From the sequence record PP355768.1: a stretch of 64,000 bases of DNA; one strand, 5' to 3'. Positions 7,309 through 39,173 of this stretch are shown piece after piece (within the stretch, counting starts at the first letter, position 1; every line of letters begins with the position of its first letter). The position numbers and the translations under genes are program-made. The notes under the pieces were generated by a model, which was given only the letters and a program-made list of their open reading frames with translations, did no database searches and was not told where the DNA came from.

Positions 7309-10155
7309 TTAGATATATGCCCATGCAACCGACTTCTCGCCCTTTGGTCCCTCCGCCTGAATTCTTGGCTGAAGTGCTCTGTAAATCCCCAAAGTATTCG
7401 AGTTGTTGGCCTTGTAGTCGAGCTTATTGTAGCCCAACAGGTAGCTGTAGTTATATAAACTGGTGATCTTCGCGGATCTAAGCAGTTTATTAGTGTTGTC
7501 CCTTATTTCAAGCGTGTAGAAAATCCCTGAAATCAGCCCCTCTTCCTGCAGCTTATCCCATCCTAACTCTAAGTCAGGTCCTACCCATTCAGCAGGGTCA
7601 GGAGCAAGGTTAAGCACCCGGAAGTTTTCCACCATACTAAGGTTCTTAGCTGAGTTCAAATCTACAGAAATTGTTACTGGAGAGCTACGACGACCATTGA
7701 TATCAACAGCGCGGATCTCGAAAATAGTCAGTCCAGCAGGCTCACCCACGATATCTTGGAACATCCTAACGTTAGGTGTGAAAGCAGTCTGCTGCACAAT
7801 ATAAGGATCCACACGGTCCGATTTACGTATTGAGTAATAGACTACGTTAGGTGTCAAGCTAGGAAGCCATGAAAGCTCTCCGTTTTTGCCAACATCACCT
7901 ACCATTCCACCAGGTGTAGGGGTATACTTAAAGTCTCTTGGTGGCAGGACGTTATTGGATATTTCAGGAACGACCTCGCTACTGTTATCCACCTGCGTTG
8001 AGTTAATAAATACATCCTCACCATACTCCTGAAGAGTTACGTTTATCTTACCATCCCTTGTGTTCTCCACCTCATCTACTAGGAAGAACTTCTTATTCCA
8101 ACCATAACGATCGTAGGTGAATACTACAGGATCATTAGGTTCTATACCAAGGAATTTGTAAGGTAAAGAGAAACTCAGAGAGCGAGAGTAACGAGACTTC
8201 TTAAGCTCTCTATCTGCCAAGCTTCTAGCAGTGTAGTAGTTGGTTATGTTAGCAAAAGAAAGTTGAAGTTTCTTGTCAACTCCACGATCTTCATTCTTAA
8301 ACTTAGAATTATAGAACGTTATAGAGTTGGTTTTCCAGTTCAGGGTAGGATCAATCAGAGATGCCTGAACTGAGTTGTACTTATTACGGCCTGTAGTATC
8401 TGAGAGATCCAGGTCCCCGTAAGTATCTAGGAAATTAAGTTCTAGAGGAGTTTTTGAATCTTTCTCTACGGTGATGCGGAAGATACCTGATAGGTTATTC
8501 AACGCCCCCTGGAAGGATTCTAATAGCTCCTGCACGTTTTTGAACACAGAGTTGGAGTTATCCAGGATTGTGTTCATTTGCATTATTTGTCTGTTTTCGG
8601 CTGTCCAGCTCTCCCATCCAACGTATCTCCAGAAAGGTTGCCAACTAGTTTGATAAGAGGTGTCTATAATGTTTAATAGATCGGCCTCTTTTCTCCAGTC
8701 ACCAATCACCATTCTGTCTATCGGGATACTTGCACCAAAGGTAGTGGAGGTTAAGTAGTCAAATGTTTGCCATACACCATTTTGGCTGGTTTTATCTGTT
8801 CTAACAGAGCCATCTGCCTGGTATACTTTTACTTTACGTCCGCTTAATTCTGCTGATACTTCAGGAATATCAGTTCTGTTCTCCGTGATAGTGAAGCGTA
8901 TGACAGCGTATGCGGTGTCTAATAACTTGTACCTAGAATCCCAGTACTCCGGACCATTACCGTTCTCTCCTTGAAGGAAGAAATTGTTAGCAGCAGCAAT
9001 ATCTCTTAGTACCGTAGCTACCGTCTGGTCTGGCTTACCGTGGAATGTCCAGATTCGTATATCCCCGTTACCGTCATTGTACTTGTATTCTTGACCATGC
9101 TCTGAGAGAGATGTTGACGGAAGTCCTGTGGAAATTCTTGCCATAGTATCTCCCGACACCCTTTTTTGTCCAAAGCACGTACGAGAGGTACTGTCAGTTT
9201 GATCAGTACAGATCATAGGGGCATCCCCAAACTGGAAGTCGAGGAATCCTTCAATCTCACCCTCACAAAACGCGTAAACCACATACACAACGTTTGGATT
9301 GTTTCTTTCTGTATCCGCGAAAACCGGAATACCAGGAACTTTTTGAGTACCATATACTACAGGAATAAACTTGGCCGCAAGGTTGAAGTCCAGGTCTACT
9401 TCTTTAGTAACAGTCTCGTAATACTTTTTAAGGCTGTAGCTCTTGGAGAGACCGAATAATTTCTTCTTAGATTCTAGCTTGTATCGTTCTTCTTTTACTT
9501 GATATTTAGCTAGGAAGTTAACGCTCTTGTTGGCGTGGAAGAATCCGTAGTCCTCTTGGTATTCCGGTCGTTTGGCACCGTGAGAAGGTAGTAATTCTCC
9601 ATTTACAATCTCAAGTCCTCGGTGGGAGGCGTCGTCTGTGAAGCGTCCAGCAACTCGCTCAAAATCGTAGAATTCGTTAGAACAGTTCCAAGTTATAACA
9701 GAAGTACCAACTCCGGATACTGTATTGCTTTCCTTGATACCACCACCCACGATCTTACCCCTGAAGAAGAGTAATGGGCCATTAGTATCTGGGTCCACCG
9801 GAAGGATTTCCCCATTGTCGTCGATGATCGCCTGATATATAGAAATAGAACGATCTAAAAATGATACGCCACTTTGCACTAACTTAATGACTTCGTTGGC
9901 ATCCGTACCAGTAACACTGAAGTTCAAACTACCGACGGTTAACGTACGATTTTGTTTGTGACTGCTGATTGTTTTTATTTTCCCTGATTGGAAGAGTATA
10001 CCACCGTAGTTGATATCTCTCATATAGTCCGTCATATAAGCGTAAACAGCATTATTACCCGTGGACCCCGGGAGTTCGATAGAGACAAGATACGCTAATC
10101 GTATCTTGTCATTGTTGGCAAGGTAGGCTTTCGCAGAAGGAAGGATCTGTCTCAT
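7309..10155 (-). CDS. pb3: Baseplate hub / tail tip protein pb3
   Basis: 948 aa (T5 pb3 is ~949 aa); sequence recognisable; between pb9 and pb4. Confidence 0.92.
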   Translation of the reverse strand: MRQILPSAKAYLANNDKIRLAYLVSIELPGSTGNNAVYAYMTDYMRDINYGGILFQSGKIKTISSHKQNRTLTVGSLNFSVTGTDANEVIKLVQSGVSFLDRSISIYQAIIDDNGEILPVDPDTNGPLLFFRGKIVGGGIKESNTVSGVGTSVITWNCSNEFYDFERVAGRFTDDASHRGLEIVNGELLPSHGAKRPEYQEDYGFFHANKSVNFLAKYQVKEERYKLESKKKLFGLSKSYSLKKYYETVTKEVDLDFNLAAKFIPVVYGTQKVPGIPVFADTERNNPNVVYVVYAFCEGEIEGFLDFQFGDAPMICTDQTDSTSRTCFGQKRVSGDTMARISTGLPSTSLSEHGQEYKYNDGNGDIRIWTFHGKPDQTVATVLRDIAAANNFFLQGENGNGPEYWDSRYKLLDTAYAVIRFTITENRTDIPEVSAELSGRKVKVYQADGSVRTDKTSQNGVWQTFDYLTSTTFGASIPIDRMVIGDWRKEADLLNIIDTSYQTSWQPFWRYVGWESWTAENRQIMQMNTILDNSNSVFKNVQELLESFQGALNNLSGIFRITVEKDSKTPLELNFLDTYGDLDLSDTTGRNKYNSVQASLIDPTLNWKTNSITFYNSKFKNEDRGVDKKLQLSFANITNYYTARSLADRELKKSRYSRSLSFSLPYKFLGIEPNDPVVFTYDRYGWNKKFFLVDEVENTRDGKINVTLQEYGEDVFINSTQVDNSSEVVPEISNNVLPPRDFKYTPTPGGMVGDVGKNGELSWLPSLTPNVVYYSIRKSDRVDPYIVQQTAFTPNVRMFQDIVGEPAGLTIFEIRAVDINGRRSSPVTISVDLNSAKNLSMVENFRVLNLAPDPAEWVGPDLELGWDKLQEEGLISGIFYTLEIRDNTNKLLRSAKITSLYNYSYLLGYNKLDYKANNSNTLGIYRALQPRIQAEGPKGEKSVAWAYI

Positions 10156-10766
10156 AGACTTTCTCTCAAAACTAGGTTAACCCCATCGTATACACCATCA
10201 ACTGTGATTTCTTCGCTGAATGAATCTCCGTTCATTAACTTAGTTTGGAAGAGAATCCCATTGAAACGTGGTCTCTCGGAGCCGTTGGTAGTGAGCAACA
10301 GATCAGGGTATAGATTAAGCGTCCATACTCCTGCTACGTTTTTAAAAGATGTAATCTTGTACACCTTTGGATGTGTGGTTAACTGGAACAAATCACCCGG
10401 TTTTGGTTCCCCTACTAGAGAGCCTGTATTGGTGATAACCAGTGTGGAGCCTTTTTGTCCGGCGGCAATGCGACAGTTGTTCGCATCTCCCCTTACTCGG
10501 TAAGACTCATAATGTGGAAGCATAACGTCGAGGTAGCCTCTGGTACGTTTATACTCTAAAATTGCTGACGAAAGTACAGCATACTCATCGGGAAACATCA
10601 CAGGATAACTAATGTTAAGACCCCAATACTGAGTGGCTGTTTTAACTTCGTTAACCTTGCCGTTTGGTAGCTCGTCTCTGATCACTGGATCGTTATCGAT
10701 CAGTGTAGCTTTATCAAACCCAAGGCCGTTATACTGAGGATGTGTAAAGGGATCTGGTAATCTCAT
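10152..10766 (-). CDS. pb9: Distal tail protein (Dit) pb9
   Basis: 204 aa, MRLPDPFT..YNGLGF as in T5 pb9; synteny. Confidence 0.92.
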   Translation of the reverse strand: MRLPDPFTHPQYNGLGFDKATLIDNDPVIRDELPNGKVNEVKTATQYWGLNISYPVMFPDEYAVLSSAILEYKRTRGYLDVMLPHYESYRVRGDANNCRIAAGQKGSTLVITNTGSLVGEPKPGDLFQLTTHPKVYKITSFKNVAGVWTLNLYPDLLLTTNGSERPRFNGILFQTKLMNGDSFSEEITVDGVYDGVNLVLRESL

Positions 10767-26317: not shown

Positions 26318-28294
26318 TTAGGCAAGCCTTTGCACAGCAATCCTAACCTCAGGAAGAATTACTCGCATATTCATGATATTGCTCATCTCAACGTTAACCC
26401 AAACTTCAACACTACCGTCAGCCCTAGCTATCAGCCAATAGATAATGGCATAATCGCCTTGAGTAGCAGAGTTAGTAGTAGCAGGTGCCCACATAGCCTT
26501 CATTTGCATGGCGTTGTTCCCAGGAATAACTCCACACTGGGTTACGGTTCCGCGTATAAAGTGGAACGGCACACACATGTTAACTGGAAGACACATGATT
26601 TGATGCACACGTTTCTGGAAGTGATTTCCGAAAATTCTCAGCCTACTATCTACCTCGCTCCACTGGGTAAGATCTTCTAGAGGGTTATAACATCCAATCC
26701 CTGCAGCAGCAATCCACTCATCGTTTTTCCAGTCTAGAGTGACGACGCAAGCCCCATTTCGGGAGTTATTAACCCCTAACCACAAGGTAGCCAGGTGGTG
26801 ACTAGCATTACCGCTAGTACGTAAGTTCCCTCCAATATCAGCAGAGCCGGTACCGCCCACTAGGCGGAGAGGTCGAGTTGCTTCGGACCATACTGGACCC
26901 CACTGGTTTCCGATTTCTGGTGGGTTAGATTTTACATACCACTGCGCATCAGATCTAAAATTGTAAACTCCTACAGTGGTTACATGCATCTCACTTATGT
27001 TACCTTGCCCAAATTCCGCACCATTATCTGGTCGAGTTAGAGGCTGATTGAAGTGAACATATCCATTATTACCAACAGTAGGGTTGCCACTAAATCTAGC
27101 AACATTGGTCGCAATAACTCGGATATCAGGCCTATTACCTGGGCTGTAGTTTATATTGTTCTGGTTTATGAACTTCCACCCAGTGTTCATTAGGTTTATA
27201 CCGTTTACAATGAACTCTCTAGGGCTGATTTTAATCTCCTGGTTGCGGGAGCCAAATACGTTCTCTGCGTAGAACCCCTGCCCATTGTATTTCATGTTAG
27301 TAATATACCAGCGAACACGTTTAGGAACCCGGAAGTTATTGTCACGGTAAATGGCATTGTTACCCCAACCACTACCAGCATTGTTGTTATCTGTGTTCTC
27401 CCACCCCATAAAGTTATTGGGCGGACCACGGAAGAAACCTGCCTTATACTCAATTTCCTGGTATGACTCGGTCTGGATATTATGAGCATATGGCCCGCCT
27501 ACCGGGTTAGAGCTTTTACCATATCTAGGGCCCATGTGTCCATACATGTTACGATTGAGAGTTTCCCCACGTAAGCATATACTGTTAACACCAGTATTAC
27601 GCATCCATGGGTGGCGCATAGCATCAACACCAATAGTAAGTGGTCTATTAGGCGGAGACACAGAACCGGCTATATTGCCACTAAAAGCCCCCCTATAGAG
27701 TACCCAACCGGCTTTAATAATTGTTTGAAAGTTAGGAGGTATAGGAGCTCCAACCGGCGGCCCAGGCCCCCTGTCCCCCCATTCTGAGTTAACGCCCCAG
27801 GTGTACATACACCCAGTACCATCTCGTAGCTTCTCATTAATAGTACCTGGCGTCTCTTCGAAATAGAAACTAATATCCATGTGTAAGTCTGCAGAAGCAC
27901 AAACGTTAGTCTTCATACTAGCCATAGTACCTGCAGAAACCTGGGAACCGACAGTATTACTAAAGTAAGCGTTATACGCCTTGGCGCCCACACCCAGGGA
28001 TGTACCGTAAATGAAACGTCTAGTACCATCCTCAAACTCAACCTCAGTTAAGACAACCCTGTCGTAGTCTGCGGACAGTACCTGAATAATCCTATCGGGC
28101 ATACGCGAACAGCGATACCAATCACCACCGTCCCAGAGTGTAACCTCATGGGTCTCTAAGATGACGACGTGTGGCATGTCGCTATGGAATATGGTATCCC
28201 AACCATTATTTAAGTGGTTGTTAATATCCTTGTTATTGCCCGAGGTTAGGGAGAGAACCTTCTTCCCTCCTATGCGACCTGCAAAAAAGCCCAT
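26318..28294 (-). CDS. pb5: Receptor-binding protein, pb5 (oad) family
   Basis: [20 protein letters not shown]-terminus matches the pb5 family; 658 aa; next to terS. Confidence 0.88.
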
Positions 28295-28632: not shown

Positions 28633-28691
28633 AGGGTCGGGATGTTCTTTCTAATTGGGGGGTGGTATGGTAGTCCGATTACCCCCCTAGC

Positions 28692-28735
28692 TAACTATTA
28701 GTACCCTAACTATTTCGCTAGGGTACTATTAGCTT
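28692..28735. terminator. Hairpin between the convergent 28408 ORF and dmp
   Basis: AGTACCCTA-9-TAGGGTACT stem. Confidence 0.6.
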
Positions 28736-28737
28736 TC

Positions 28738-29454
28738 TTATGATGCGATGGCTAACGATTGAATGAATTGTTGTGGCTTAATTCCGTAGTCGCTTCTTTC
28801 TTCTTCGGTCATACCTTCCCAGCAATGAGCTAAACGCTCGCAAAGATATTGATAATCATTATCATCATCCAGCGCTTCATCTATGAATGACTCACCCGCA
28901 AGGCGCACACCAATAGATAGAATATCGTTGATTGCGGTAGCGTCCATCGTTTGAAGGCCAGCAGCAGCAGCAGCAGCCAACACGCCTTTATTATCGTCAA
29001 TCATAGTGATAGTAGAGTTCGGATATTCAGCTTTAAGCATTTCGAAATAATGCGTTTTATAGATACCATCTTTTGCATAGTACACCTCTTTGTAATCAGC
29101 ATCGCCAATATATCGGTGCAATACATCGCGGGATAGTATCTGGATATTACCACCGCGCCCCGCCCTGATACGTTGTTTCCGTAGGAAATAGTAATCGCTT
29201 TTGCTCATATAACGAGCGGTAACAACGATGTTTAATACAGTGGGATCATTAAGCGATGCCCGCATATATTCAACCAGCGGTAAAAGAGTGTCGGTCATAA
29301 TTGCATCATGAACGCAAGCCTTTTCCCGGTACATGTTTAAATCTAAGTTACCTTTCTCATCCATACACGGGAACACACGGGCGAAGGAATTAATAACAGT
29401 CCCGTCTAAATCCCATAACTTAATTGCCTTAATTGCCAGTTTATTAAAAGCCAT
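28738..29454 (-). CDS. dmp: Deoxynucleoside-5'-monophosphatase (HAD family)
   Basis: WDLDGT motif I and MIDDN motif; first gene of the T5 terminal repeat. Confidence 0.9.
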   Translation of the reverse strand: MAFNKLAIKAIKLWDLDGTVINSFARVFPCMDEKGNLDLNMYREKACVHDAIMTDTLLPLVEYMRASLNDPTVLNIVVTARYMSKSDYYFLRKQRIRAGRGGNIQILSRDVLHRYIGDADYKEVYYAKDGIYKTHYFEMLKAEYPNSTITMIDDNKGVLAAAAAAGLQTMDATAINDILSIGVRLAGESFIDEALDDDNDYQYLCERLAHCWEGMTEEERSDYGIKPQQFIQSLAIAS

Positions 29455-29527
29455 TTTTCATTTCTCCGGTTTCGGGGTTGTTGGTAATTAATCAAGCGAG
29501 CTATATTATAACTCGCTTTGTTAATTA

Positions 29528-29989
29528 TCAGAAGAATAAAGTTAAAGCATCAGCCAATTCAGCCGGTTTAATCCGGGTAGCCATTACCGGGACAATTGCC
29601 AGCGGCGGCGTATATTCGCTAGAAGAATATTCCCCGTAGTTCATCACGTCGCCAAGTAAATAGGTATCATCATAATCGTTTTCACTTACGACGATAAACA
29701 TAAGGCCAGCGGCTACGGCGTCAATCTCCACGGTTTCACAAATATCAGCCTCATAGAGAATCGAATCAGCGGCTACCAATTGGGAGATAATGCCCGACTC
29801 TTTAAAATCAGCGGGGCGCGGGAGAATATCGGTCACGGCTTTTAATACAGTGGCGCCGTCAACGGTAATGATTTTTTGATAGCTAACATGCGGGCGCCCT
29901 TCGCTATCGCGGGAAACAACAAGGCTGTTTTCTACGACGTTGGACGCGGTGAAAGATTTACGATTGTTATAGATGAAAGTAAGTTTCAT
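29528..29989 (-). CDS. Pre-early hypothetical protein
   Basis: 153 aa; GGAG RBS; between A1 and dmp as in T5. Confidence 0.75.
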   Translation of the reverse strand: MKLTFIYNNRKSFTASNVVENSLVVSRDSEGRPHVSYQKIITVDGATVLKAVTDILPRPADFKESGIISQLVAADSILYEADICETVEIDAVAAGLMFIVVSENDYDDTYLLGDVMNYGEYSSSEYTPPLAIVPVMATRIKPAELADALTLFF

Positions 29990-30017
29990 TTGTTTCTCCA
30001 GCTTATTTATTTAGGGG

Positions 30018-30305
30018 TTATTTTGATTCAATACTAGCAACGAAAATTAAATCTGTCTCATTCCATAAATCGGGAATATCATCTTCCCGCAAATATTCTA
30101 GCGCATCGCTAGAGTTCTGGAATGAAACAAAACTATCATGGGATCGGACTATATGAAATACTCCGCTCCACTCGCTTTGCATTAAATATATGTTGGGATC
30201 GCCAGCGTTTCGATATACAGTCTCGTACATAACGCGCTGCAATGTTACGCTATCGGAATCGTTAACCATCTTCGGGAGTCTGGTTTTAACAGCCATTTTA
30301 ATCAC
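30018..30305 (-). CDS. Pre-early hypothetical protein
   Basis: 95 aa; operon position after A1. Confidence 0.7.
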   Translation of the reverse strand: MIKMAVKTRLPKMVNDSDSVTLQRVMYETVYRNAGDPNIYLMQSEWSGVFHIVRSHDSFVSFQNSSDALEYLREDDIPDLWNETDLIFVASIESK

Positions 30306-30340
30306 CTTTAATTAGCCGGGGCAAATACCCCGGCTTTTTA

Positions 30341-32023
30341 TTATGCAAAGAAAACGCCGTCTTTAAAGTCAATCAAGGTACGTTGACCGTTTTCATAGGT
30401 GATCAAATGCGTTTGTGACCAGCTAGACGCGCCAATGTTATAGCCCATATCCAGCGAGCCAGCGACGCCAGCAGTATAAACGCCGCCGTAAATGCTGGGC
30501 GTGTGCGTGTGGCCAGTGTTCATCTTACCCAGCTTACGGAATCCTTTCGGGTTGCCACGAGCGCCGTTAATGCCGTTGTGACCGTGGGAACCGCATTCGA
30601 TGCCCGCGATTTTCATCGATTCGTCTGTAGTTAAGAAGATCGCAGCAAAATCGCAGCCAGCAACATTGCGCAGGGCGTAATCCAGCACGTTAAAAGTATC
30701 GTCTTTGTTTTCGATTGCCTCATAAATCGCAGCATTCAGGCGATAATAAAGATGAGCATTCGCCGGGTCTTGCTGAATGTTAGCCTTGCTATCATCCAGC
30801 CAGCGAGAAAGCGCAAGATCGTGGTTCGATTCAACGATCACCGTTTGGCTAAATTCACGTTCCATTTGCTCCAGCACGCGCCCCGTATCGATCAGGTCGT
30901 CAATTACCTTGTCACGTCCGGCGGCATATTGTTTCGCAAGGAAAACACCACTAGCGCGGTTGTGATGGTTGCGCGACGTGAAATCATGCACATCATGCAC
31001 AATCTGGTAACGAGGGCGCAGGATATCTACTAGCGCGGTTCCGCTAGGGTTATATTCCCAGCTTGCCGCCGCGACAGCGTGATCCAGCTTTTCGGCGTGA
31101 ATGTCACCATATTGCAGCGCGGCAACGTGGCCCGTTACTTCTTCGCCACCGTTAACAGTAAATTTATGATTAAGATCGTAAAACATCCCGCTTTCGTCCA
31201 TCGTTTCAAGCTGGCGAGCAAAGAAGTTGCCGTTGTCGTCGATCTCTACCAGCAAAGCGCCGTAATTATGCAGCGCTTCGGCTTTTTGGCCCGCTTTTTG
31301 CTGAATATAATTTTTCAGCGTCGCCGTGCCCGTTGAATACATACGGCGCACCGTGTCGCCCTTCATTGCCGGGACACTTTCGGCGGTGATTTTAGCGTGA
31401 CCAATAGCCAGCCCTTTCAGGCCGTAGGCGGTCGCAGTCTCGCCAAAGCCGGACAGCGGAAAATCAGCAGTCGGCAGAATGTTAATTTCTGCCATGAATG
31501 CAAAGCCTGTTTCACGGTTGCCCAAAAACACGTTTTCATCACAAATGAAATCTGAGAAAGCATCATCATATTTCAGATCATCATTGCCCTGCCCATTCTG
31601 GAAGCCCTTTTTATTGTAAGCATATTTGCTTACTAATAGAGTAGCACCGAGATATTTCGCGGCCTCCTGTAAGGTTTTCCAGAAATTAGCATGAGGGAAG
31701 GTATTATTCTGAATCGACGTTAACAGAAAACGCTTACCCGGAATTACCTTCCAGCTTTCGACGCTAGAATTAAGCTGACCAGCGGCAACGGGGCGGGAAT
31801 CTTCCACCGCAACACGTTGGGCGCGTTTTTCAGCAGCAGGTTTAACAGGCTTGTTATTATCCAGCCAATCGCAAATTTCGCTAGAGTGTTTCGCCGTGCC
31901 GTAATGCTCTTTGCTCAATTCGTCGCAGATCTCCAGCTTTTTAGCGCGCAGACGTTTACCCCAAAAATTGAGGTTATTTGCGGCGGTTAAAATAGCTTTT
32001 TGTTTCTCAATTGCAATGATCAT
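30341..32023 (-). CDS. A1: A1 protein (host DNA degradation and second-step transfer; metallophosphoesterase-fold nuclease)
   Basis: 560 aa; YGDIH, HD..D, SNHD, HGH and GHTH motifs; T5 A1-like N-terminus. Confidence 0.93.
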   Translation of the reverse strand: MIIAIEKQKAILTAANNLNFWGKRLRAKKLEICDELSKEHYGTAKHSSEICDWLDNNKPVKPAAEKRAQRVAVEDSRPVAAGQLNSSVESWKVIPGKRFLLTSIQNNTFPHANFWKTLQEAAKYLGATLLVSKYAYNKKGFQNGQGNDDLKYDDAFSDFICDENVFLGNRETGFAFMAEINILPTADFPLSGFGETATAYGLKGLAIGHAKITAESVPAMKGDTVRRMYSTGTATLKNYIQQKAGQKAEALHNYGALLVEIDDNGNFFARQLETMDESGMFYDLNHKFTVNGGEEVTGHVAALQYGDIHAEKLDHAVAAASWEYNPSGTALVDILRPRYQIVHDVHDFTSRNHHNRASGVFLAKQYAAGRDKVIDDLIDTGRVLEQMEREFSQTVIVESNHDLALSRWLDDSKANIQQDPANAHLYYRLNAAIYEAIENKDDTFNVLDYALRNVAGCDFAAIFLTTDESMKIAGIECGSHGHNGINGARGNPKGFRKLGKMNTGHTHTPSIYGGVYTAGVAGSLDMGYNIGASSWSQTHLITYENGQRTLIDFKDGVFFA

Positions 32024-32106
32024 TATCTAAATTCTCCAGTTAATGGGATATAGGCAAAATTGCCAAATATAACGCCGTGTTGCTAGTGGCGTTATAATTT
32101 GCGACT

Positions 32107-32334
32107 TTAAACTATTGCGGGAATAATGCTGGCGGATATTCCAAAGGCTACGGCTAGAATAATAAAGATTATTGACCAGCGGCGGCAAATATTCGCTTTC
32201 TTAAACCAGAAGTCACGGCGGAATAAATCCATTTGTTCACTGCCTATTTCCATGAAATTATAATAACCATAGAGACAAGCGGCGGCGAAAAAGCCAGCGA
32301 TAAGAATTAAGGATTCAGTAGGGAAAAAGATCAT
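32107..32334 (-). CDS. Small two-TM membrane protein
   Basis: 75 aa with two hydrophobic segments; between A2 and A1. Confidence 0.75.
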   Translation of the reverse strand: MIFFPTESLILIAGFFAAACLYGYYNFMEIGSEQMDLFRRDFWFKKANICRRWSIIFIILAVAFGISASIIPAIV

Positions 32335-32600
32335 TTTACAACCTCCTTTTCTTCTACGCTGAAAGCGTAATTAAGAAGGTAAATTTCGCGGGAAGATAAT
32401 TCCAACATTTCCGGCTTAAATACTTCGCGGTTAATAGCCATACCGTAAGTATCCGCATCAGGGTTAACCCACAAAACAATATATTCAGGTACTTTAACGC
32501 TTGGGGGCGTCATAACCTTATTATCCTGATAACCCGTCTGGATTAATTCATCCACAACGGTTCCCGTTAATTTAATAACGGAGCCTCTAATTAAAGCCAT
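32331..32600 (-). CDS. Pre-early hypothetical protein
   Basis: 89 aa; GGAG RBS; ATGA coupling to the next ORF. Confidence 0.7.
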   Translation of the reverse strand: MALIRGSVIKLTGTVVDELIQTGYQDNKVMTPPSVKVPEYIVLWVNPDADTYGMAINREVFKPEMLELSSREIYLLNYAFSVEEKEVVK

Positions 32601-32666
32601 TTTATTTCTCCAGTTATGGGGGACAAAATATTTAATTATGCGCCCCGCTAGGGAGGCGCATTATAA

Positions 32667-33071
32667 TTATTCTGCCGACTCTTTTACTTCATCCTGAACG
32701 CCAACCATACGGGCGATAACGTCCAGTTGATCCAGCTTCATTTGTTCCAAACTTGCCAGGCCGTCGGCATCTTCGATCAGGCCGTCAGCAATGGCGTGCT
32801 GAGTGAGAACGCGCACATAGTGAGCCTTACGCAGGGAGGAACCGCCGCCGACTTTGCGCGGCTTATCGGACTTCTGATACACCTTTGCGCTAACCAGTTT
32901 AGAGCGCACTTTAACATGCGATTCAGCACCGACAGCCTTTGCAATATCGATAAGACCTTGCGAGTTAGCCACCTCCAGACCTTCGGCGGCAATAATGCCT
33001 TCATACATAGAAATCGCAGTTGCGGCGTTTGTTTCGTTCCATGCAAATTTTTCGGTTTTAGTAGCAGTCAT
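32667..33071 (-). CDS. A2: A2 protein (second-step DNA transfer, DNA-binding)
   Basis: 134 aa; VRSKLVSAKVYQKS..RKVGGGSS.RKAHYVR as in T5 A2. Confidence 0.92.
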   Translation of the reverse strand: MTATKTEKFAWNETNAATAISMYEGIIAAEGLEVANSQGLIDIAKAVGAESHVKVRSKLVSAKVYQKSDKPRKVGGGSSLRKAHYVRVLTQHAIADGLIEDADGLASLEQMKLDQLDVIARMVGVQDEVKESAE

Positions 33072-33365
33072 GATATATCTCCAGTTTTATTTAAGGGTTA
33101 AGGCTAGAATGTTATTCCTAATAAGCTGTTAATAATAGCGGTTAACCTCATCACCGTAATATTCCGGCACTATCGTTAAAAGTATTATACAGCTTATTCA
33201 GAAAACACTTTAAAGCTATTTCTTTCAAAATATATTAGCGCATTATTCGTCGCTTTATTTTGCCGCTCTTAATTGCCGCGGTAGCATGATATGTACCGTC
33301 GAAAGGATATATTATAAATATACCGAATCGCCGGGTGAGGCGGTTTAATTAATACCATTTAGCCG

Positions 33366-33626
33366 TTAAGCGACGGCTAACCATTTATCATCTTTGCGAA
33401 TAACCTTTACAACGTCGCCGGAATCGACCCGGACGCTATAAAGTTTTAAATCACTGTTTTTTGCTTTTTCCGTTTCGGCGTATACCGCGTTGATTTTATC
33501 AAACGGGATCATAGCCGCCCCTTTGATATATCCGATTTTTTCATTTTCGCCCGGCTTACTTACGTCGCCAGTAACAAAAGGAATAAAAACGGAATCACCG
33601 ATCATTGGGGTTTTAACGTTCTGCAT
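33366..33626 (-). CDS. Pre-early hypothetical protein
   Basis: 86 aa; GGAG RBS. Confidence 0.72.
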   Translation of the reverse strand: MQNVKTPMIGDSVFIPFVTGDVSKPGENEKIGYIKGAAMIPFDKINAVYAETEKAKNSDLKLYSVRVDSGDVVKVIRKDDKWLAVA

Positions 33627-33732
33627 GTTTCTTACTCCAGTTTAGTTTATTGGGTTATCCGGTTAACACTCTTTTACTGCTAGAGTGTTAACAGAAAACT
33701 CAATTACCCTTACTGAGAGAATCGACTTTTCC

Positions 33733-33797
33733 AAATTTTTAAAGAGCGGTGTTGCTTATTGAGATTCTATAATAAAGCGTTATCGGCAGATTGTCAA
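33733..33797 (-). promoter_or_regulatory. Pre-early promoter followed by a boxA-like site
   Basis: TTGACA (33797-33792)-17-TATTAT (33774-33769); CGCTCTTTAAAAATTT at 33748-33733. Confidence 0.75.
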
Positions 33798-33982
33798 ACG
33801 TTATTTTGTAAAGATTTTAGATAACGCATCATGTTATCCCAAATCATCGGCAAGCCTTGCTGACCTCCGCGCTGATAAGAGCGGTAACGCCGTTTTATAT
33901 CGCGCTGCATTTTGACCAATTCCGAGCCTGCCATTTTGTTCAATTTTGCTGCCGGTTTAGATGATATTACAAATCGTTTCAT
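33794..33982 (-). CDS. Small basic pre-early protein
   Basis: 62 aa Lys/Arg-rich; AAAGG RBS. Confidence 0.65.
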   Translation of the reverse strand: MKRFVISSKPAAKLNKMAGSELVKMQRDIKRRYRSYQRGGQQGLPMIWDNMMRYLKSLQNNV

Positions 33983-33997
33983 GTTGTCAACCTTTAA

Positions 33998-34123
33998 TTA
34001 GTGGAGTGTATGATTTCGTTTCTTTTCCATAAAGATGTTCCCATCTTTATGTTGGAAATAAACTTCTGTATCATACACCTCTAAATACTGCTTTATGAAT
34101 TCTTCAACTTCTTCAACGGTCAT
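33998..34123 (-). CDS. Small acidic ORF (41 aa); its natural start at 34158 appears frameshifted
   Basis: MTVEEVEEFIKQYLEVY...; the upstream ATG AAT T|AAA ATC AAT CGA would extend it in another frame. Confidence 0.4.
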   Translation of the reverse strand: MTVEEVEEFIKQYLEVYDTEVYFQHKDGNIFMEKKRNHTLH

Positions 34124-34212
34124 AGCAGCCGCTACATTTCGATTGATTTTAATTCATGTTTTCGGTTCCCTTATAAAGTAAAGAAAGCCGATAACGCTTT
34201 TTATAGAATCCC

Positions 34213-34228
34213 AAATTGTTAAAGAGCA
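34213..34228 (-). promoter_or_regulatory. rrn-type boxA antitermination element
   Basis: TGCTCTTTAACAATTT, identical to the E. coli rrn leader boxA. Confidence 0.75.
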
Positions 34229-34230
34229 GT

Positions 34231-34359
34231 GTAGGGCGGGGGCAGACTATACTTGTTTCGGCCTTTCCGTTCGGGGTAGTCGGGGCTATGTTACCGCCTC
34301 CTGATACCTGACTACTAGTGAAACGCTTTCGTGTTTCCCGTTTCGTCTTGCCGCCCTAC
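34231..34359 (-). ncRNA. Candidate structured 5' leader RNA (129 nt)
   Basis: GTAGGGCGG/CCGCCCTAC closing stem, internal GTAGTC/GACTAC stem and GAAA-capped hairpin; starts at the predicted TSS. Confidence 0.6.
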
Positions 34360-34366
34360 GAGATAA

Positions 34367-34394
34367 ATAATAACACAATGACGTTTAGCCGCAA
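34367..34394 (-). promoter_or_regulatory. Pre-early promoter driving the leader and A2-A1-dmp direction
   Basis: TTGCGG-16-TATTAT with an extended TG. Confidence 0.6.
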
Positions 34395-34590
34395 GCGGAG
34401 AATTGTAAAGAAGCGTAAAGAGAAAACAGGCCCACGATAGATAGGAAGCGCGCGCACGTGACACAATATTTAAAGAAAGTCAACGAATATTTTTACTATT
34501 TTTCTTCAAAAGGGGTTGACAAAAGCTATTTCACACGAGGTGAGGAGATCGCCTCATACCCGGTATGATTCATCGGCTTTTATCTAAAAC

Positions 34591-34911
34591 CGCTTAGAAT
34601 CGATTCTAGAGCGTTTTAGACCCTGTTAATAACTTATACAAAAAGCAAAAATGAAATTTAATTAGTTATCCACTAGACAAATGATTATTTTTATGAAAAC
34701 GCAAAATAATGCTTGCGTTTATTTTATGCTGTACTCCTGTTTTCCGGGCAAGTTATCCACAGCACAAAATAACTTGACAAGCTGAGAAGCGGTATAACGA
34801 GATATCCCCAGACTTATCCACAGGTTATCCTACTGTATATTTATACAGTATATTCCAGCAGCGGTAATACTCTAATATACCCCTAGAACGCTCTATAACG
34901 CATTCTGAGCG
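34591..34911. repeat. Non-coding block: inverted 29-bp motif pair flanking DnaA-box-like sites and a LexA box
   Basis: CGCTTAGAATCGATTCTAGAGCGTTTTAG (34591-34619) and an inverted copy (34883-34911); TTATCCACA at 34753-34761 and 34814-34822. Confidence 0.75.
34831..34850. promoter_or_regulatory. LexA (SOS) box
   Basis: TACTGTATATTTATACAGTA, 1 mismatch to the consensus TACTGTATATATATACAGTA. Confidence 0.75.
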
Positions 34912-34959
34912 CTTTAAATTTAGAAGCCATATTAAAGGCCATTGCTAGAGGGGCGCAGA

Positions 34960-34995
34960 AAAACAAAAAGCCCGCTCATTATAAGCAGGCTTATT
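34960..34995 (-). terminator. Terminator after the leftward pre-early operon
   Basis: Minus strand AAGCCTGCT..AGCGGGCTT followed by TTTGTTTTT. Confidence 0.65.
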
Positions 34996-35011
34996 ATTAG
35001 TTAGCTAACTA

Positions 35012-35359
35012 TTAGCGGAATACCGTTTCAATTGTTTCGCCGCTAGAGCATACCGACCCGCCGCGATAAAACAGGCGTTCGGTTTTATATTTGGTTAGCA
35101 GATCATAGAGATCCAGATCATCGGAAAGCGGGTAAGATTCCCCCAGCGCGGAAACGGAAACAGGTTTACCCGCCACCAGATCACGGCAAATCAGAATCAG
35201 CAAAGGCCAACTAATATTGATAGCATCGCCCCGCAATCCAATTTTGAGGGTAGCCACTTCGTCAATATGACGCGCATTCTGGCGGCTAACGTATTGAATC
35301 ACAGATTCCATCGTTTTATAGTGAGCCAGAAAATATTTGTTGACATAGATATAAATCAT
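35012..35359 (-). CDS. Pre-early hypothetical protein
   Basis: 115 aa; ATGA coupling. Confidence 0.72.
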   Translation of the reverse strand: MIYIYVNKYFLAHYKTMESVIQYVSRQNARHIDEVATLKIGLRGDAINISWPLLILICRDLVAGKPVSVSALGESYPLSDDLDLYDLLTKYKTERLFYRGGSVCSSGETIETVFR

Positions 35360-35880
35360 AGGTATACGACCCCGCTAACCTTCCAACCGGATTTTAAACC
35401 TTCCTCAATATGAAGAATAGTTTCAGCATCCGGGATATAGATAAACGTTTTCAATTCGCGCAGATTAATGACCGCCTTTCCGTCAACTATCTGGATATAG
35501 CCCAAATAGATTGCCCGCTCTAGAACGGAATGAAGGGGCGAACCACCATTAACGAGGTTGCAGGAATGACCGGGCCAGTACATATAAAACGACCCTTCTA
35601 CCCCAGCATTACAGTATTTTTCGTCGTCGTCTTCTTCCCAATCATCCTCGCCTAACATACTTTCAGCATGTTCGCAAGCCTTTTCCCAGGAAAGGGAATC
35701 GACGTCAATTCCACGACCTAAAAAATGAAGGTCAGTCCAGCCAGTACCGCAAAGGTTAGTATCACATTTGAGGACAGCGGCGACTTCCTGAGACTCAATT
35801 CGCCCGCCCTCTAAATATAAACCTTCTTCCGCTTCTACCGTACAATTAATGCCCGGTACGCAAGATTTCATATGAAACAT
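35356..35880 (-). CDS. Pre-early hypothetical protein, acidic
   Basis: ATG 35880 after GGAG; GEDDWEEDDDE patch. Confidence 0.72.
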   Translation of the reverse strand: MFHMKSCVPGINCTVEAEEGLYLEGGRIESQEVAAVLKCDTNLCGTGWTDLHFLGRGIDVDSLSWEKACEHAESMLGEDDWEEDDDEKYCNAGVEGSFYMYWPGHSCNLVNGGSPLHSVLERAIYLGYIQIVDGKAVINLRELKTFIYIPDAETILHIEEGLKSGWKVSGVVYL

Positions 35881-35933
35881 GGTTTTCTCCAATAATGGGG
35901 GCGGCTAGAGATTCAGCCGCCGGGAAGGGGATT

Positions 35934-36431
35934 TTACAGCTTATCGCGGAAAGTATCAAGCCGGTTGTTTAGCTCTTTAATCGCGTCGGCATGGATTTCG
36001 TCATACGTTGACACGATATCCGCCAGCTCATCCATAGTTAGCGCGCTAACATTAATATCAGTTTTCACGGTTAGCTTTTCCGGTTCCGGGGCGGCTGGTG
36101 GTTCCGTGGAGAAGCTGAGAGATTCCGGGCGAACTAGGAAAATCTCTAGTTCGGTTGCACCGTTTTCACAGTCAACCTCATACGTATTTTCCCCAATGTA
36201 AACATCAAAACCGTAACCGTAAACTCCACCAACACGCAACGCCATTCCGGTGATTTCGTCGTGATCGGGGTAACAATCGCGGCGGTCAATTTGTTGCGCC
36301 AAAGCCTTAACGTTATCTTTTGCAACAATAATTGCAAAGCGTTCGCACCGCTCGTCTGCGTTGCGCAAATAGCGGAAAGCCTCGGCAAGCGTCATCTTTT
36401 TACCTTCAAAAGTAGCGGTTAACCGTTCCAT
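35934..36431 (-). CDS. Pre-early hypothetical protein
   Basis: 165 aa; GGAG RBS. Confidence 0.72.
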   Translation of the reverse strand: MERLTATFEGKKMTLAEAFRYLRNADERCERFAIIVAKDNVKALAQQIDRRDCYPDHDEITGMALRVGGVYGYGFDVYIGENTYEVDCENGATELEIFLVRPESLSFSTEPPAAPEPEKLTVKTDINVSALTMDELADIVSTYDEIHADAIKELNNRLDTFRDKL

Positions 36432-36496
36432 TTTTGTCTCCAGTTAGTTAGCAGGGTAATTATTATAGCGCCCCATTATAGAGGCGCTGGATATAA

Positions 36497-37459
36497 TTAC
36501 TCTGATTCGTTTTCAATCAGGCTAGAAAGATTGACGCCTTTCAATACTTCGTCAATCATTTCGCCTACATTGAAACTTTGTACCAGTTCCAACATGGCGG
36601 CTTGCATTGCAGCGTCAGCCGCAATCACCGCTTTGCGGTTGTTCGGCGCATACTGGCTAACCGCAAAATTCAGCAGGTTAGCAATTACCACACGACCTAC
36701 CGCCGTGTCAACATAACCGCGAACCATAAACGGCGCTTTGCTGGCGGCGATGCCGGAAACTTTTTTCAGGACGATGGAACCAGCTTCCAGTTTGGCAGCG
36801 TTTACGGCAGCGTTTTTGTTAGCGGCAACGATAGCGGTAGCGGTAGATTTGATAGTATTCATTTGTAATGCTCCAGTCTCAAAATTATTAGGGTTAACTA
36901 CATTTTCAGTAACAGCCGGGGCGACTTCTTCTAGCTCGCCATCATAACGATAATTTCCAGTCCTTGCCCCTTCTTCGATTTCGATATCGTAGAAGTTACA
37001 TGGTAACAGGATACTACCGTCCTTGTCAAGCACAAAAATCATCATTTCGCTAGAGATTCGTGCTGGTGGTAGTTCCAGATGATCACAAAGATTTTTAATC
37101 CATGCGCGGGCATCGGTGAAAGCAAGCAGTTCGCTTTCATGGTAGCAAAAACGTCTCGACGCTTGCTTACCCTCGGACGCCTTATACAAATAAGCGTCCG
37201 TAGTAGTAGACACTATCAGATCAATAGGCTGGCTGTCAACCAAATATTGATCATCGTGATAAATAACAATCGCCGCGCCGGGGTTGGCTAGAGCGTAGTC
37301 ACGGCAATGCTCAAAGGCATAGCCGGATCTACTTTCCATATTTGCGCGATAAACGGCCAAAATATGACCAATAGAGGCGCACTTACTGCCGTCTAACAGG
37401 TTGCGAGCGCCACCGCGAACCATAGGCAAATTAGCAACGGGGGTAAACTTCTGTAACAT
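36497..37459 (-). CDS. Pre-early hypothetical protein with an Ala-rich amphipathic C-terminal half
   Basis: 320 aa; first gene after a promoter; AAAGGAG RBS. Confidence 0.78.
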   Translation of the reverse strand: MLQKFTPVANLPMVRGGARNLLDGSKCASIGHILAVYRANMESRSGYAFEHCRDYALANPGAAIVIYHDDQYLVDSQPIDLIVSTTTDAYLYKASEGKQASRRFCYHESELLAFTDARAWIKNLCDHLELPPARISSEMMIFVLDKDGSILLPCNFYDIEIEEGARTGNYRYDGELEEVAPAVTENVVNPNNFETGALQMNTIKSTATAIVAANKNAAVNAAKLEAGSIVLKKVSGIAASKAPFMVRGYVDTAVGRVVIANLLNFAVSQYAPNNRKAVIAADAAMQAAMLELVQSFNVGEMIDEVLKGVNLSSLIENESE

Positions 37460-37491
37460 TTTCTGTTACTCCTTTGTTTGGCTGAGAATCT

Positions 37492-37634
37492 ATTATAGCA
37501 AGATTCCCAGCTTTTTAGCAAGCACTATTTTCTCTAGGCTTGTTCCCGTTCAGGAGATCGCATTATGGCGGAATCGGATTTGATTGTCTACTACTAAAAA
37601 TAGTAGTTGCTTCCCGCTAGAGTTATGTTATTAT
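37492..37634. promoter_or_regulatory. Divergent pre-early promoters
   Basis: Minus: TTGCTA-18-TATAAT (37521-37492). Plus: TTGCTT-16-TG.TATTAT (37607-37634). Confidence 0.65.
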
Positions 37635-37662
37635 TATGACTCCAAACAAAGGAGATCGAAAA

Positions 37663-37776
37663 ATGGCTTTTTCAATGTTGGCGCTCGGTTTAGTCGGTTC
37701 TATGATGGTTTTGGGCTTTATCGCTTTTTGCGGCTATGCCCTCTATGATACCTTGTTTAATAAGGAGGCTTTTTAA
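37663..37776 (+). CDS. 37-aa single-pass membrane peptide
   Basis: AAAGGAG RBS; MAFSMLALGLVGSMMVLGFIAFCGYALYDTLFNKEAF. Confidence 0.6.
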   Translation: MAFSMLALGLVGSMMVLGFIAFCGYALYDTLFNKEAF

Positions 37777-37876
37777 TGAGAACTTTACGCGGTGGTAGTT
37801 CCTAGAGACTAAATGGATTGCTATTTCTGCAATTATTAGCTTGCTAATCTTATGGGTAGCGGAGGTATTTTTATGA
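37776..37876 (+). pseudogene. Broken paralogue of the next gene
   Basis: MRTLRGGSS resembles MSRSLRGGSP; the hydrophobic tail KWIAISAIISLLILWVAEVFL is in another frame. Confidence 0.45.
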
Positions 37877-38052
37877 GTAGATCATTACGGGGCGGTAGCC
37901 CAAAAAGCCGGGGACACGGGATTTACCACGTCCGGCAGTCTAACGATCGTTTTCGCCAGGAAATACGCTCCAGCGAAAAAGTTAAGGGCGTGCAATGGCC
38001 TTGGGTTGTTATCCTGATAATCGTTCTCATTATCATTGGGTCGGCTTTATGA
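37873..38052 (+). CDS. Small basic protein with a C-terminal TM anchor
   Basis: GGAGG RBS before ATG 37873; WPWVVILIIVLIIIGSAL tail. Confidence 0.65.
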   Translation: MSRSLRGGSPKSRGHGIYHVRQSNDRFRQEIRSSEKVKGVQWPWVVILIIVLIIIGSAL

Positions 38053-38192
38053 TGCTTACAATCCTATTTATTAGCCTGCTATGTATTCTGCCCGGCCTGG
38101 TGGCGCTAGAGGTCTGGTCACGATCACCGGTTGACGCGGAGCGCGAATTAGAGCGCGAAAAAGCAAAGCGTGACGGCTGCCCGTTGCTATAG
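38049..38192 (+). CDS. 47-aa membrane protein
   Basis: ATGA-coupled; MMLTILFISLLCILPGLVALEVW then a charged tail. Confidence 0.6.
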   Translation: MMLTILFISLLCILPGLVALEVWSRSPVDAERELEREKAKRDGCPLL

Positions 38193-38200
38193 GTCGGCTT

Positions 38201-38299
38201 TATGATACTTTTGATAATAGTTAGCATAGTAATTATTACACTGGCAATAGTTTCGGTCGTAAACTATTTTTGGCCTGAATGTTTTCACGGCGATATGTA
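38201..38299 (+). CDS. 32-aa membrane peptide
   Basis: MILLIIVSIVIITLAIVSVVNYFWPECFHGDM; shares the GGTCGGCTTTATGAT start context with the previous ORF. Confidence 0.55.
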
Positions 38300-38362
38300 A
38301 GAGTGTCGCCGCCCTCCTCCACCGCGTGACCCCTTACTAAAATACCCCCACGAAAATTAAAT

Positions 38363-38470
38363 CGCTTAGAACGCTTCCTAGAGCGCTTAAAATCGATATC
38401 AGCAGAAAGTGTTGCTGGGAAATACTGTATAAATATACAGTAGGATAACCTGTTGATAAGTCTGTTGATA
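38363..38470. repeat. Inverted copy of the 34803-34911 module (29-bp motif, LexA box, DnaA-like boxes)
   Basis: Reverse complement of 38413-38470 aligns to 34803-34860 with an identical ~30-bp core. Confidence 0.8.
38423..38442. promoter_or_regulatory. LexA (SOS) box
   Basis: TACTGTATAAATATACAGTA, exact reverse complement of the box at 34831. Confidence 0.75.
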
Positions 38471-38565
38471 ACTCGCTACCGATCGATTGAGGCGTCAAGC
38501 TAATTTACAATTTTGTATAACTCTGGGGATAACTTAAATGATAGTGTTTCTCACTTCCTTTTTGA

Positions 38566-38660
38566 AATGCGAATCATTCTCATTCGCATTCAGCTCGGTA
38601 AACGCAAATCATTCTCATTCGCATTCAACTTCTCAAATGCGAATCGTTCTCATTCGTATT
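38566..38660. repeat. Three 25-bp palindromic repeats at 35-bp period, Fur-box-like
   Basis: AATGCGAATCATTCTCATTCGCATT and variants at 38566, 38601, 38636. Confidence 0.85.
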
Positions 38661-38692
38661 TGCATTTCCGACCCCCCGGCCCTTCCTGCGCT

Positions 38693-38904
38693 TATGTGCG
38701 AATCCGACAATTTGTCAAGCAAAATATTACGTGAGGCTGCTAGGGTATGTGCAAATCCGATGAAAATTTATTTTTACCGCCCTGGGGGTTGGCGTGAGTT
38801 GGTGGAAGTATGTGCAAATCCGACACAGCTAGTAAATATAGCAGCGCGCAGTTTGCTGCGGCGCAGCGGTGGGCGCGAGTTTGGGGAAGTATGTGCAAAT
38901 CCGA
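38693..38904 (+). repeat. Four direct 15-bp repeats in the putative injection-stop region
   Basis: TATGTGC(A/G)AATCCGA at 38693, 38746, 38809, 38890. Confidence 0.9.
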
Positions 38905-39080
38905 CGGGTATTTTTTAGGGGAGGGATAAACGGGGTTAATTGGGGCAATTCGGGGATGATGGGGGCAGGGGGCAGATAAGGGAAAATATTATGAGTTAAA
39001 TGAGGGTAAAGGGGTTGACACAGAAAAAATTCCTGTGGCTCATCTATCTATTTAATCTAACTTTTTTATCTTATAGAGTT

Positions 39081-39109
39081 ATTCTAACATACATCTCAAA
39101 TAATGTCAA
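39081..39109 (-). promoter_or_regulatory. Strong promoter pointing into the repeat region
   Basis: A-tract UP element then TTGACA-17-TAGAAT. Confidence 0.75.
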
Positions 39110-39130
39110 GAATTTTTACGAGAGTGTTTG

Positions 39131-39163
39131 AAAAAGTGTCACGGGGTAGATGTTTACCCCGTG
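39131..39163 (-). terminator. Terminator ending the leftward early operon
   Basis: CACGGGGTA-6-TACCCCGTG plus T5 on the minus strand. Confidence 0.75.
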
Positions 39164-39173
39164 AACTCGTAGA

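Follow-up and report, generated by a model that had tools for sequence, protein, structure and literature searches.

The stop in T5 DNA entry after 8% of the genome is a question dating from the 1960s, and the elements surrounding it have been annotated in detail. In the T5 record AY587007.1, the annotated order is palindrome D, the inverted repeats D′ and C′ (IRD′ and IRC′), direct repeat C (DRC) copies 1–4 with palindromes E, G, and I, major nick 1 at 7.9% (9661-9668), and then the copies of direct repeat D (DRD). Repeat Region 3 is regarded as the probable seat of the injection stop signal, the T5 inverted repeats carry paired DnaA boxes, and the shear point was estimated at 9618 (Davison, bioRxiv 10.1101/866236), a position that falls inside the annotated DRC copy 4 (9607-9637). 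It is for T5 only, via the shear mapping to about 9618, that a pause of DNA entry at or near the repeat array is established (Davison, bioRxiv 10.1101/866236). The T5 pause is a period of host chromosome degradation and host transcription shut-off, and second-step transfer requires A2, an essential pre-early DNA-binding protein. On the host side, the relevant systems are the clusters of Fur operators in E. coli, for which a 6-bp spacing of sites is typical and 83% of which overlap a promoter (Chen et al. 2007, PMC2189734).

Location and architecture of the array

The DNA analyzed here, referred to as the window, is a stretch of 64,000 nucleotides corresponding to positions 62001-126000 of PP355768.1, such that window base 38000 is base 100000 of the record. 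The 1.2 kb around the array matches Klebsiella phage vB_Kpn_AM_K6 (PP355768.1) at 100% identity, and the gene neighborhood is that of a T5-like phage of the Sugarlandvirus type, with a dmp gene situated beside A1, A2, and the pb5-type gene (Table 1). The bounds of the terminal repeat, which constitutes the first-step-transfer DNA, were estimated by comparison with phage IME260, whose annotated terminal repeat covers positions 1-10277, and both the T5 repeat and the repeat in the window end at the same ‘ttctgtgg’ motif. The repeat is present once in PP355768.1, so that the assembly has collapsed both terminal copies. To the right of the repeat are early genes encoding a Ser/Thr phosphatase, a thymidylate synthase, and a ribonucleotide reductase. 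The record itself has a length of 261,044 bp and is classed as Straboviridae, although the part covered by the window is a T5-like genome; names like thyA_2 and nrdB_2 point to a record in which two different phages are joined. A G-rich stretch (about 38920-39010) is located ahead of the terminal-repeat boundary, while the minus strand just beyond it (39081-39164) bears a strong promoter-like site (TTGACA, 17 nt, TAGAAT with TG; 11/12) and a terminator-like hairpin.

Table 1. Features of the terminal repeat and its surroundings, in window coordinates.
Feature	Position	Strand	Basis or remarks
pb5-type receptor-binding protein	26318-28294	minus	Neighborhood gene
Terminal repeat (first-step-transfer DNA), ~10.4 kb	~28665-39041 (bounds approximate)		Homology to the IME260 repeat; similarity lost after 39041
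A1, DNA transfer protein	30341-32023	minus	phrog_1745; tblastn matches named A1, with roughly 1,100 phage records bearing the gene
A2, pre-early DNA-binding protein, candidate rival binder	32667-33071	minus	phrog_1725 ‘DNA binding protein’; homologues named A2
Palindrome D homologue, ctgtataaatatacag	38423-38441		T5 comparison
IRD′-spacer-IRC′ homologue	38444-38535	plus	Architecture according to Davison
DnaA-type boxes	38451-38459 and 38463-38471 (3 bp apart); 38524-38532	plus	Paired boxes within IRD′-spacer-IRC′
Conserved leader unit, holding the 7-1-7 site	38534-38558		Weakly Fur-like, 7.6 and 4.6 bits
Palindrome copy 1, AATGCGAATCATTCTCATTCGCATT	38566-38590		Predicted Fur sites from 38563 (14.4 bits) and 38569 (13.0 bits)
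Palindrome copy 2	38601-38625		Predicted Fur sites from 38598 (14.7 bits) and 38604 (13.5 bits)
Palindrome copy 3	38636-38660		Predicted Fur sites from 38633 (11.6 bits) and 38639 (9.5 bits)
Homologue of the T5 major nick 1 (7.9%) motif	38684-38691	plus	T5 annotation 9661-9668, aligned sequences
Four DRD repeats	38695-38906 (starts 38695, 38748, 38811, 38892)	plus	Six matches against 1.6 expected

The array is situated approximately 400 bp inside the right edge of the terminal repeat. All three palindrome copies that a preliminary description of this DNA had placed at 38566, 38601, and 38636 are present, with start-to-start distances of 35 and 35 bp. Each copy comprises 25 nt, composed of 9-nt arms and a 7-nt center, and copies 2 and 3 show 2 mismatches each relative to copy 1. 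Tandem Repeats Finder returned a period of 35, 2.7 copies, and a score of 129 for the array. When up to three mismatches were allowed, the 64 kb contained the 25-mer at the three array positions only, and 100 dinucleotide-preserving shuffles of the window did not contain it at all. The same description had pointed to a weaker 7-1-7 site at 38539-38553; the site exists, while its scores on the Fur matrix introduced below are low. The leader unit that holds it is part of the piece with the widest conservation in the region, which is still present in Serratia phage Kamaji and in Proteus phage Stubb. In PP355768.1, the coding sequence vBKpnAMK6_00149 (window 38538-38918) reads through the palindromes and the DRD repeats. 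Since the unit lengths and indels of the relatives are not multiples of three and T5 has no annotated gene there, this coding sequence is probably spurious, and on the same two grounds the array is non-coding. A reading of the array as a promoter gained little from the sigma-70-type matches inside it, which were weak, the best being 9/12 on the minus strand.

Aligned with T5, the three palindromes are recognizable as the Sugarlandvirus-type version of direct repeat C with palindromes E, G, and I of Repeat Region 3. The palindrome units align with the T5 DRC copies, Tequintavirus and Epseptimavirus genomes share 66-76% identity with the region over about 97% of 301 bp, and the order of elements in the window is that of T5, namely palindrome D, the inverted repeat with DnaA boxes, the array, the nick motif, and DRD. 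The array is thus a feature already known and annotated in T5 (AY587007.1), an identity that the preliminary description had missed, and no new element is added here; the earlier placement of the repeats at the injection-stop region agrees with this element order and homology, as they sit in the homologue of the T5 injection-stop region. Among the individual elements, the palindrome D type was also found in Vibrio phage Dax, and no shuffle reached the six matches obtained with the DRD pattern. The nick 8-mer occurs in the window at the frequency expected by chance, so that a search with it is uninformative. In Proteus phage Stubb (locus L023, about 2344), the terminal-repeat boundary predicted by PhageTerm coincides exactly with the conserved nick motif, and the program may have taken the nick for the genome end. 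Additional DnaA-type boxes, two of them exact, are located on the minus strand at 34666-34822, approximately 3.7 kb left of the array, and represent the inverted partners (Davison’s Repeat Region 2) of the boxes at 38451-38532. The organization of the array nevertheless differs between phages: vB_Kpn_AM_K6 has three complete, regularly spaced palindromes, whereas the DRC array of T5 consists of four irregular copies, and DT57C and Gostya9 carry up to about 12 half and full units. The hexamers also vary, being GCGAAT in vB_Kpn_AM_K6 and GAGAAT or GATAAT in the coliphages, and the Fur scores are lower in vB_Kpn_AM_K6.

Likeness of the array to Fur operators

The likeness to Fur had first been put forward as a 13/19 match to the Fur box, a count that is correct on direct comparison and was made against the consensus current in the literature, where it appears together with the term ‘Fur box’ in 50 papers. 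For a quantitative comparison, a symmetric 19-bp matrix was built from 13 footprinted or gel-shifted E. coli K-12 operators, with coordinates taken from the tables of Chen et al. 2007 (PMC2189734) and sequences from NC_000913.3. In leave-one-out scoring, the 13 operators reached 8-22 bits (median about 17 bits), and the palindromes, with the pairs of scores given in Table 1, fall within this range. The best site of each palindrome in the window (11.6-14.7 bits) is weaker than most footprinted operators. Including the leader unit, the Fur-like sites form four pairs offset by 6 bp (38534/38540, 38563/38569, 38598/38604, and 38633/38639). Under a first-order Markov null of the window, 3.7 sites of at least 12 bits would be expected in the 64 kb, compared with four in the 100 bp of the array, and the five sites of at least 10 bits were reached in 0 of 2000 Markov-1 resamples of the array composition. 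The scores changed little when ryhB, fepB, and fecI were left out of the matrix; the 17-nt run AATCATTCTCATTCGCA from the core of copies 1 and 2 also occurs in the ryhB operator of E. coli.

The comparison was also carried out in the opposite direction, with a matrix derived from phage units only and applied to 21.9 kb of E. coli DNA, 3.4% of whose positions are footprinted. In this reciprocal scan, 12 of the 13 E. coli Fur operators were the top 12 non-overlapping matches, and the thirteenth appeared at rank 15. For a test by columns, the units were anchored on the phage-derived pattern AATGNNAAT and only the twelve unanchored columns were scored; their base shares track the Fur matrix (r = 0.58, permutation P = 0.003, i.e., 0.3% of column permutations were as good). 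Counted without reference to Fur, the commonest 8-mers in 39 distinct arrays were AATGAGAA, ATGAGAAT, AATGATAA, ATGCGAAT, and AATGCGAA. By sequence, the array motif and the Fur operator motif are the same for practical purposes, with specificity against other AT-rich operators addressed through the reciprocal scan. Taken with the matrix scores, the resampling, and the relatives described below, the Fur-box likeness that had been claimed proves strong, specific, and conserved, beyond a loose AT-rich resemblance. A literature search returned no paper linking T5-type repeats to Fur and no Fur binding data for them, and Fur is not mentioned in Davison’s text (bioRxiv 10.1101/866236).

When compared to the E. 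coli Fur operator clusters of ryhB, fhuF, entC, and iucA (PMC2189734), the phage array shows the same score range, the same 6-bp pairs, and likewise several sites over about 100 bp. In contrast to those clusters, where the pairs are contiguous, the pairs of the phage array are spread at 35 bp, and the array, composed of predicted sites only, has no recognizable strong promoter and regulates no obvious gene.

Fur-like sites were also observed elsewhere in the terminal repeat. The 3′ part of dmp contains a near-consensus pair at 28845-28869 (25.2 and 18.7 bits; matching the Fur box at 18/19), about 180 bp away from the left end of the genome. This pair is kept in IME260, T5, and a 108.9-kb relative, and in two other relatives a Fur-like site is situated 20 bp from their left end; the pair may be no more than a by-product of the coding sequence. 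Two further sites, at 38016-38034 (19.8 bits) and 38213-38231 (11.6 bits), are located in small plus-strand open reading frames (37852-38052, 37995-38192, and 38202-38300) that encode membrane peptides rich in Ile, Leu, and Val, and their hexamer pattern arises because of the Ile codons. Given that the other strong matches in the repeat fall in coding DNA, the idea that the first-step DNA as a whole is enriched in functional Fur sites was rejected. The coding by-product explanation cannot account for the array itself.

Conservation and turnover among T5-like phages

The DNA extending from the last DnaA box to the first DRD was compared across 12 named phages and 39 distinct arrays in all. The arrays measured 154-346 bp and contained from three to about 12 units, some of them full palindromes and others half units in either orientation, at spacings of about 23 to 58 bp; in Kpn13-P3, the second unit is shortened. 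Because the unit spacing varies among relatives, the 35-bp period is a feature of the Klebsiella lineage and not of the whole family. Despite this heavy turnover of units, the Fur likeness is conserved. The 12 named T5-like phages each had 4-12 sites of at least 10 bits per array, with best scores of 15-22 bits, and DT57C was among the strongest (10 such sites, best 21.9). About 40 other T5-like arrays also scored 15-22 bits, and in about 40 IMG/VR loci with an A1 at least 61% identical, the densest Fur-like cluster in 13-21 kb was always situated directly before the first DRD. A 124-bp array query matched 512 phage records, all apparently T5-like, whose hosts are Salmonella, Escherichia, Klebsiella, Shigella, Citrobacter, Yersinia, and Pectobacterium. 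The same query gave no match at E ≤ 1e-5 in 5,426 E. coli genomes, and a recent capture of the array from the host was discarded on this result.

The free variation in copy number and spacing (three to about 12 units), together with the replacement of the units in two lineages, is what would be expected if the array were a slippage-prone repeat relic with no sequence-specific function. This explanation is very unlikely, given that the motif has been kept throughout the 512 records, including at least phages of Klebsiella, Escherichia, Salmonella, Shigella, Yersinia, and Pectobacterium, whereas the coding DNA left of the array is poorly conserved (Davison, bioRxiv 10.1101/866236), and that the match to an independent host operator model goes far beyond chance.

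Outside this group, the parts of the region behave differently. In Proteus phage Stubb, the Fur-like units number two or three (12-15 bits), the array position of Serratia phage Kamaji is occupied by two unrelated units with no site above 7 bits, and Vibrio phage Dax bears unrelated 8-bp-periodic repeats in place of the array. The DnaA boxes are kept in all three phages, and clear DRD repeats are kept in Kamaji and Dax (loci L022, 1809-2575, and L024, 61-347; in the window, 38695-38906). As the array is missing in Kamaji and Dax, Fur recruitment is not a family-wide requirement of two-step transfer and, if real, is an addition in enterobacterial lineages.

The different units of Kamaji at the same position are also what a co-evolving, phage-specific binder would produce, and they bear on the proposal that the palindromes are operators for a phage pre-early protein acting to release the pause. 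The obvious candidate is A2, alone or with A1, in which case the Fur likeness would be incidental or would serve to compete with Fur. In favor of A2, second-step transfer requires this DNA-binding protein, its gene is carried by the terminal repeat that also contains the array, and a 25-nt palindrome fits a dimeric binder. We nevertheless regard this proposal as rather unlikely. Although the array motif is not the same in vB_Kpn_AM_K6, Kamaji, Stubb, and Vibrio phage Dax, the basic core of A2 is invariant between these phages; it is DRD, and not the array, that is conserved together with A2 across these phages, which makes DRD the likelier A2 site. An incidental likeness would, moreover, not explain why 12 of the 13 Fur operators were retrieved by the reciprocal scan. 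A model of A2 obtained from 26 homologues (pLDDT 86) shows a conserved basic linker between two helical parts and gave no significant fold match and no Fur-type domain when compared with the PDB, and the A2 sequence had no Pfam or PDB match; the possibility that A2 is a mimic of Fur was rejected on these results.

A possible role for Fur at the transfer pause

From the position of the array, its homology to T5, its non-coding status, and its conserved equivalence to the operator, we infer Fur binding and an effect of it. The reading that we prefer, tentatively and as something just short of probable, is that the palindromes load host holo-Fur onto the last-entering first-step DNA, and that the resulting complex helps to mark or hold the DNA at the pause or couples the step to iron status. 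The untranslated stretch of Repeat Region 3 would be where first-step transfer pauses, and the DNA of the array, flanked immediately by the DnaA-box cluster on its left and by the nick-1 motif and the DRD repeats on its right, would be the final 130 bp to reach the cytoplasm ahead of the pause. Each palindrome offers two overlapping 19-bp predicted Fur sites, 6 bp apart, so that about six holo-Fur dimers could be loaded on the array, a number that the weak leader unit would raise to eight. Fur alongside DnaA might form a host-protein complex with a part in marking the DNA or holding it at the pause, or might make the step iron-dependent. The weakest step of this proposal is that, once DNA has entered, a soluble cytoplasmic protein bound to it does not, on its own, account for the stop of the DNA that follows. 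The lack of a fixed unit spacing also argues against a precisely phased complex.

The Fur reading has in common with the DnaA-box stop model of Davison the idea that host-protein sites are clustered at the trailing end of the DNA transferred in the first step, and the DnaA boxes of that model are also present in the window, approximately 30-115 bp left of the array. The two differ in the host protein and in the element of the region on which it would act, and Fur is not known to be membrane-associated. A wider claim, according to which enterobacterial T5-like phages use iron-loaded host Fur together with DnaA on the trailing first-step DNA, and the pause or its release is iron-dependent, is doubtful.

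Two other roles had been suggested for the array. One, that of an iron-state sensor, is possible. The other is a Fur sponge, whose sites would titrate Fur and thereby de-repress host iron-uptake genes, including the receptor. The sites are indeed Fur-like, and the many genome copies present late in infection would raise their number, but at the first-step stage a repeat would offer about six to eight predicted dimer sites. A cell contains thousands of Fur molecules, and six to eight dimer sites are too few to deplete such an abundant regulator. As host DNA is degraded and host expression is off during the pause, the de-repression of host genes, which could not respond, cannot be the purpose at that stage. 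The connection with a Fur-repressed receptor likewise fails, since DT57C recognizes BtuB and yet carries one of the strongest arrays. We consequently consider the sponge extremely unlikely.

The surroundings of the array also bring to mind processes other than the pause, in which it would act as DNA, i.e., as an accessory site for genome-end formation or packaging, as an origin-like module, or through hairpins on the nicked strand. The array lies within about 400 bp of the right boundary of the repeat and adjoins the conserved nick motif and the DnaA-box cluster, the region resembles oriC (Davison, bioRxiv 10.1101/866236), DnaA boxes and repeats are present in the window as in iteron-type origins, and the palindromes, when single-stranded, fold far better than shuffles (z = -6). 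Extrusion from duplex DNA would be unlikely because the arms have only 9 bp and are AT-rich, and what is conserved is the motif rather than arm complementarity or spacing. In addition, the T5 replication origins are near the genome center (Davison, bioRxiv 10.1101/866236), and a role of this kind leaves the identity with the Fur operator unexplained. We consider it improbable.

Returning to Fur, what is new here is that a candidate host protein can be named for one conserved repeat family, by means of a quantitative sequence argument running in both directions between phage and host. The comparison also divides the region by conservation, the DnaA boxes, the nick motif, and DRD being family-wide and the Fur-like array lineage-specific, and this difference leaves fewer candidates for the part that is essential to the pause. 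The Fur likeness provides a testable lead on how two-step injection works. If the proposal is true, the DNA-entry pause of T5-like phages, or its release, would hinge on a host metalloregulator and on the iron state of the cell.
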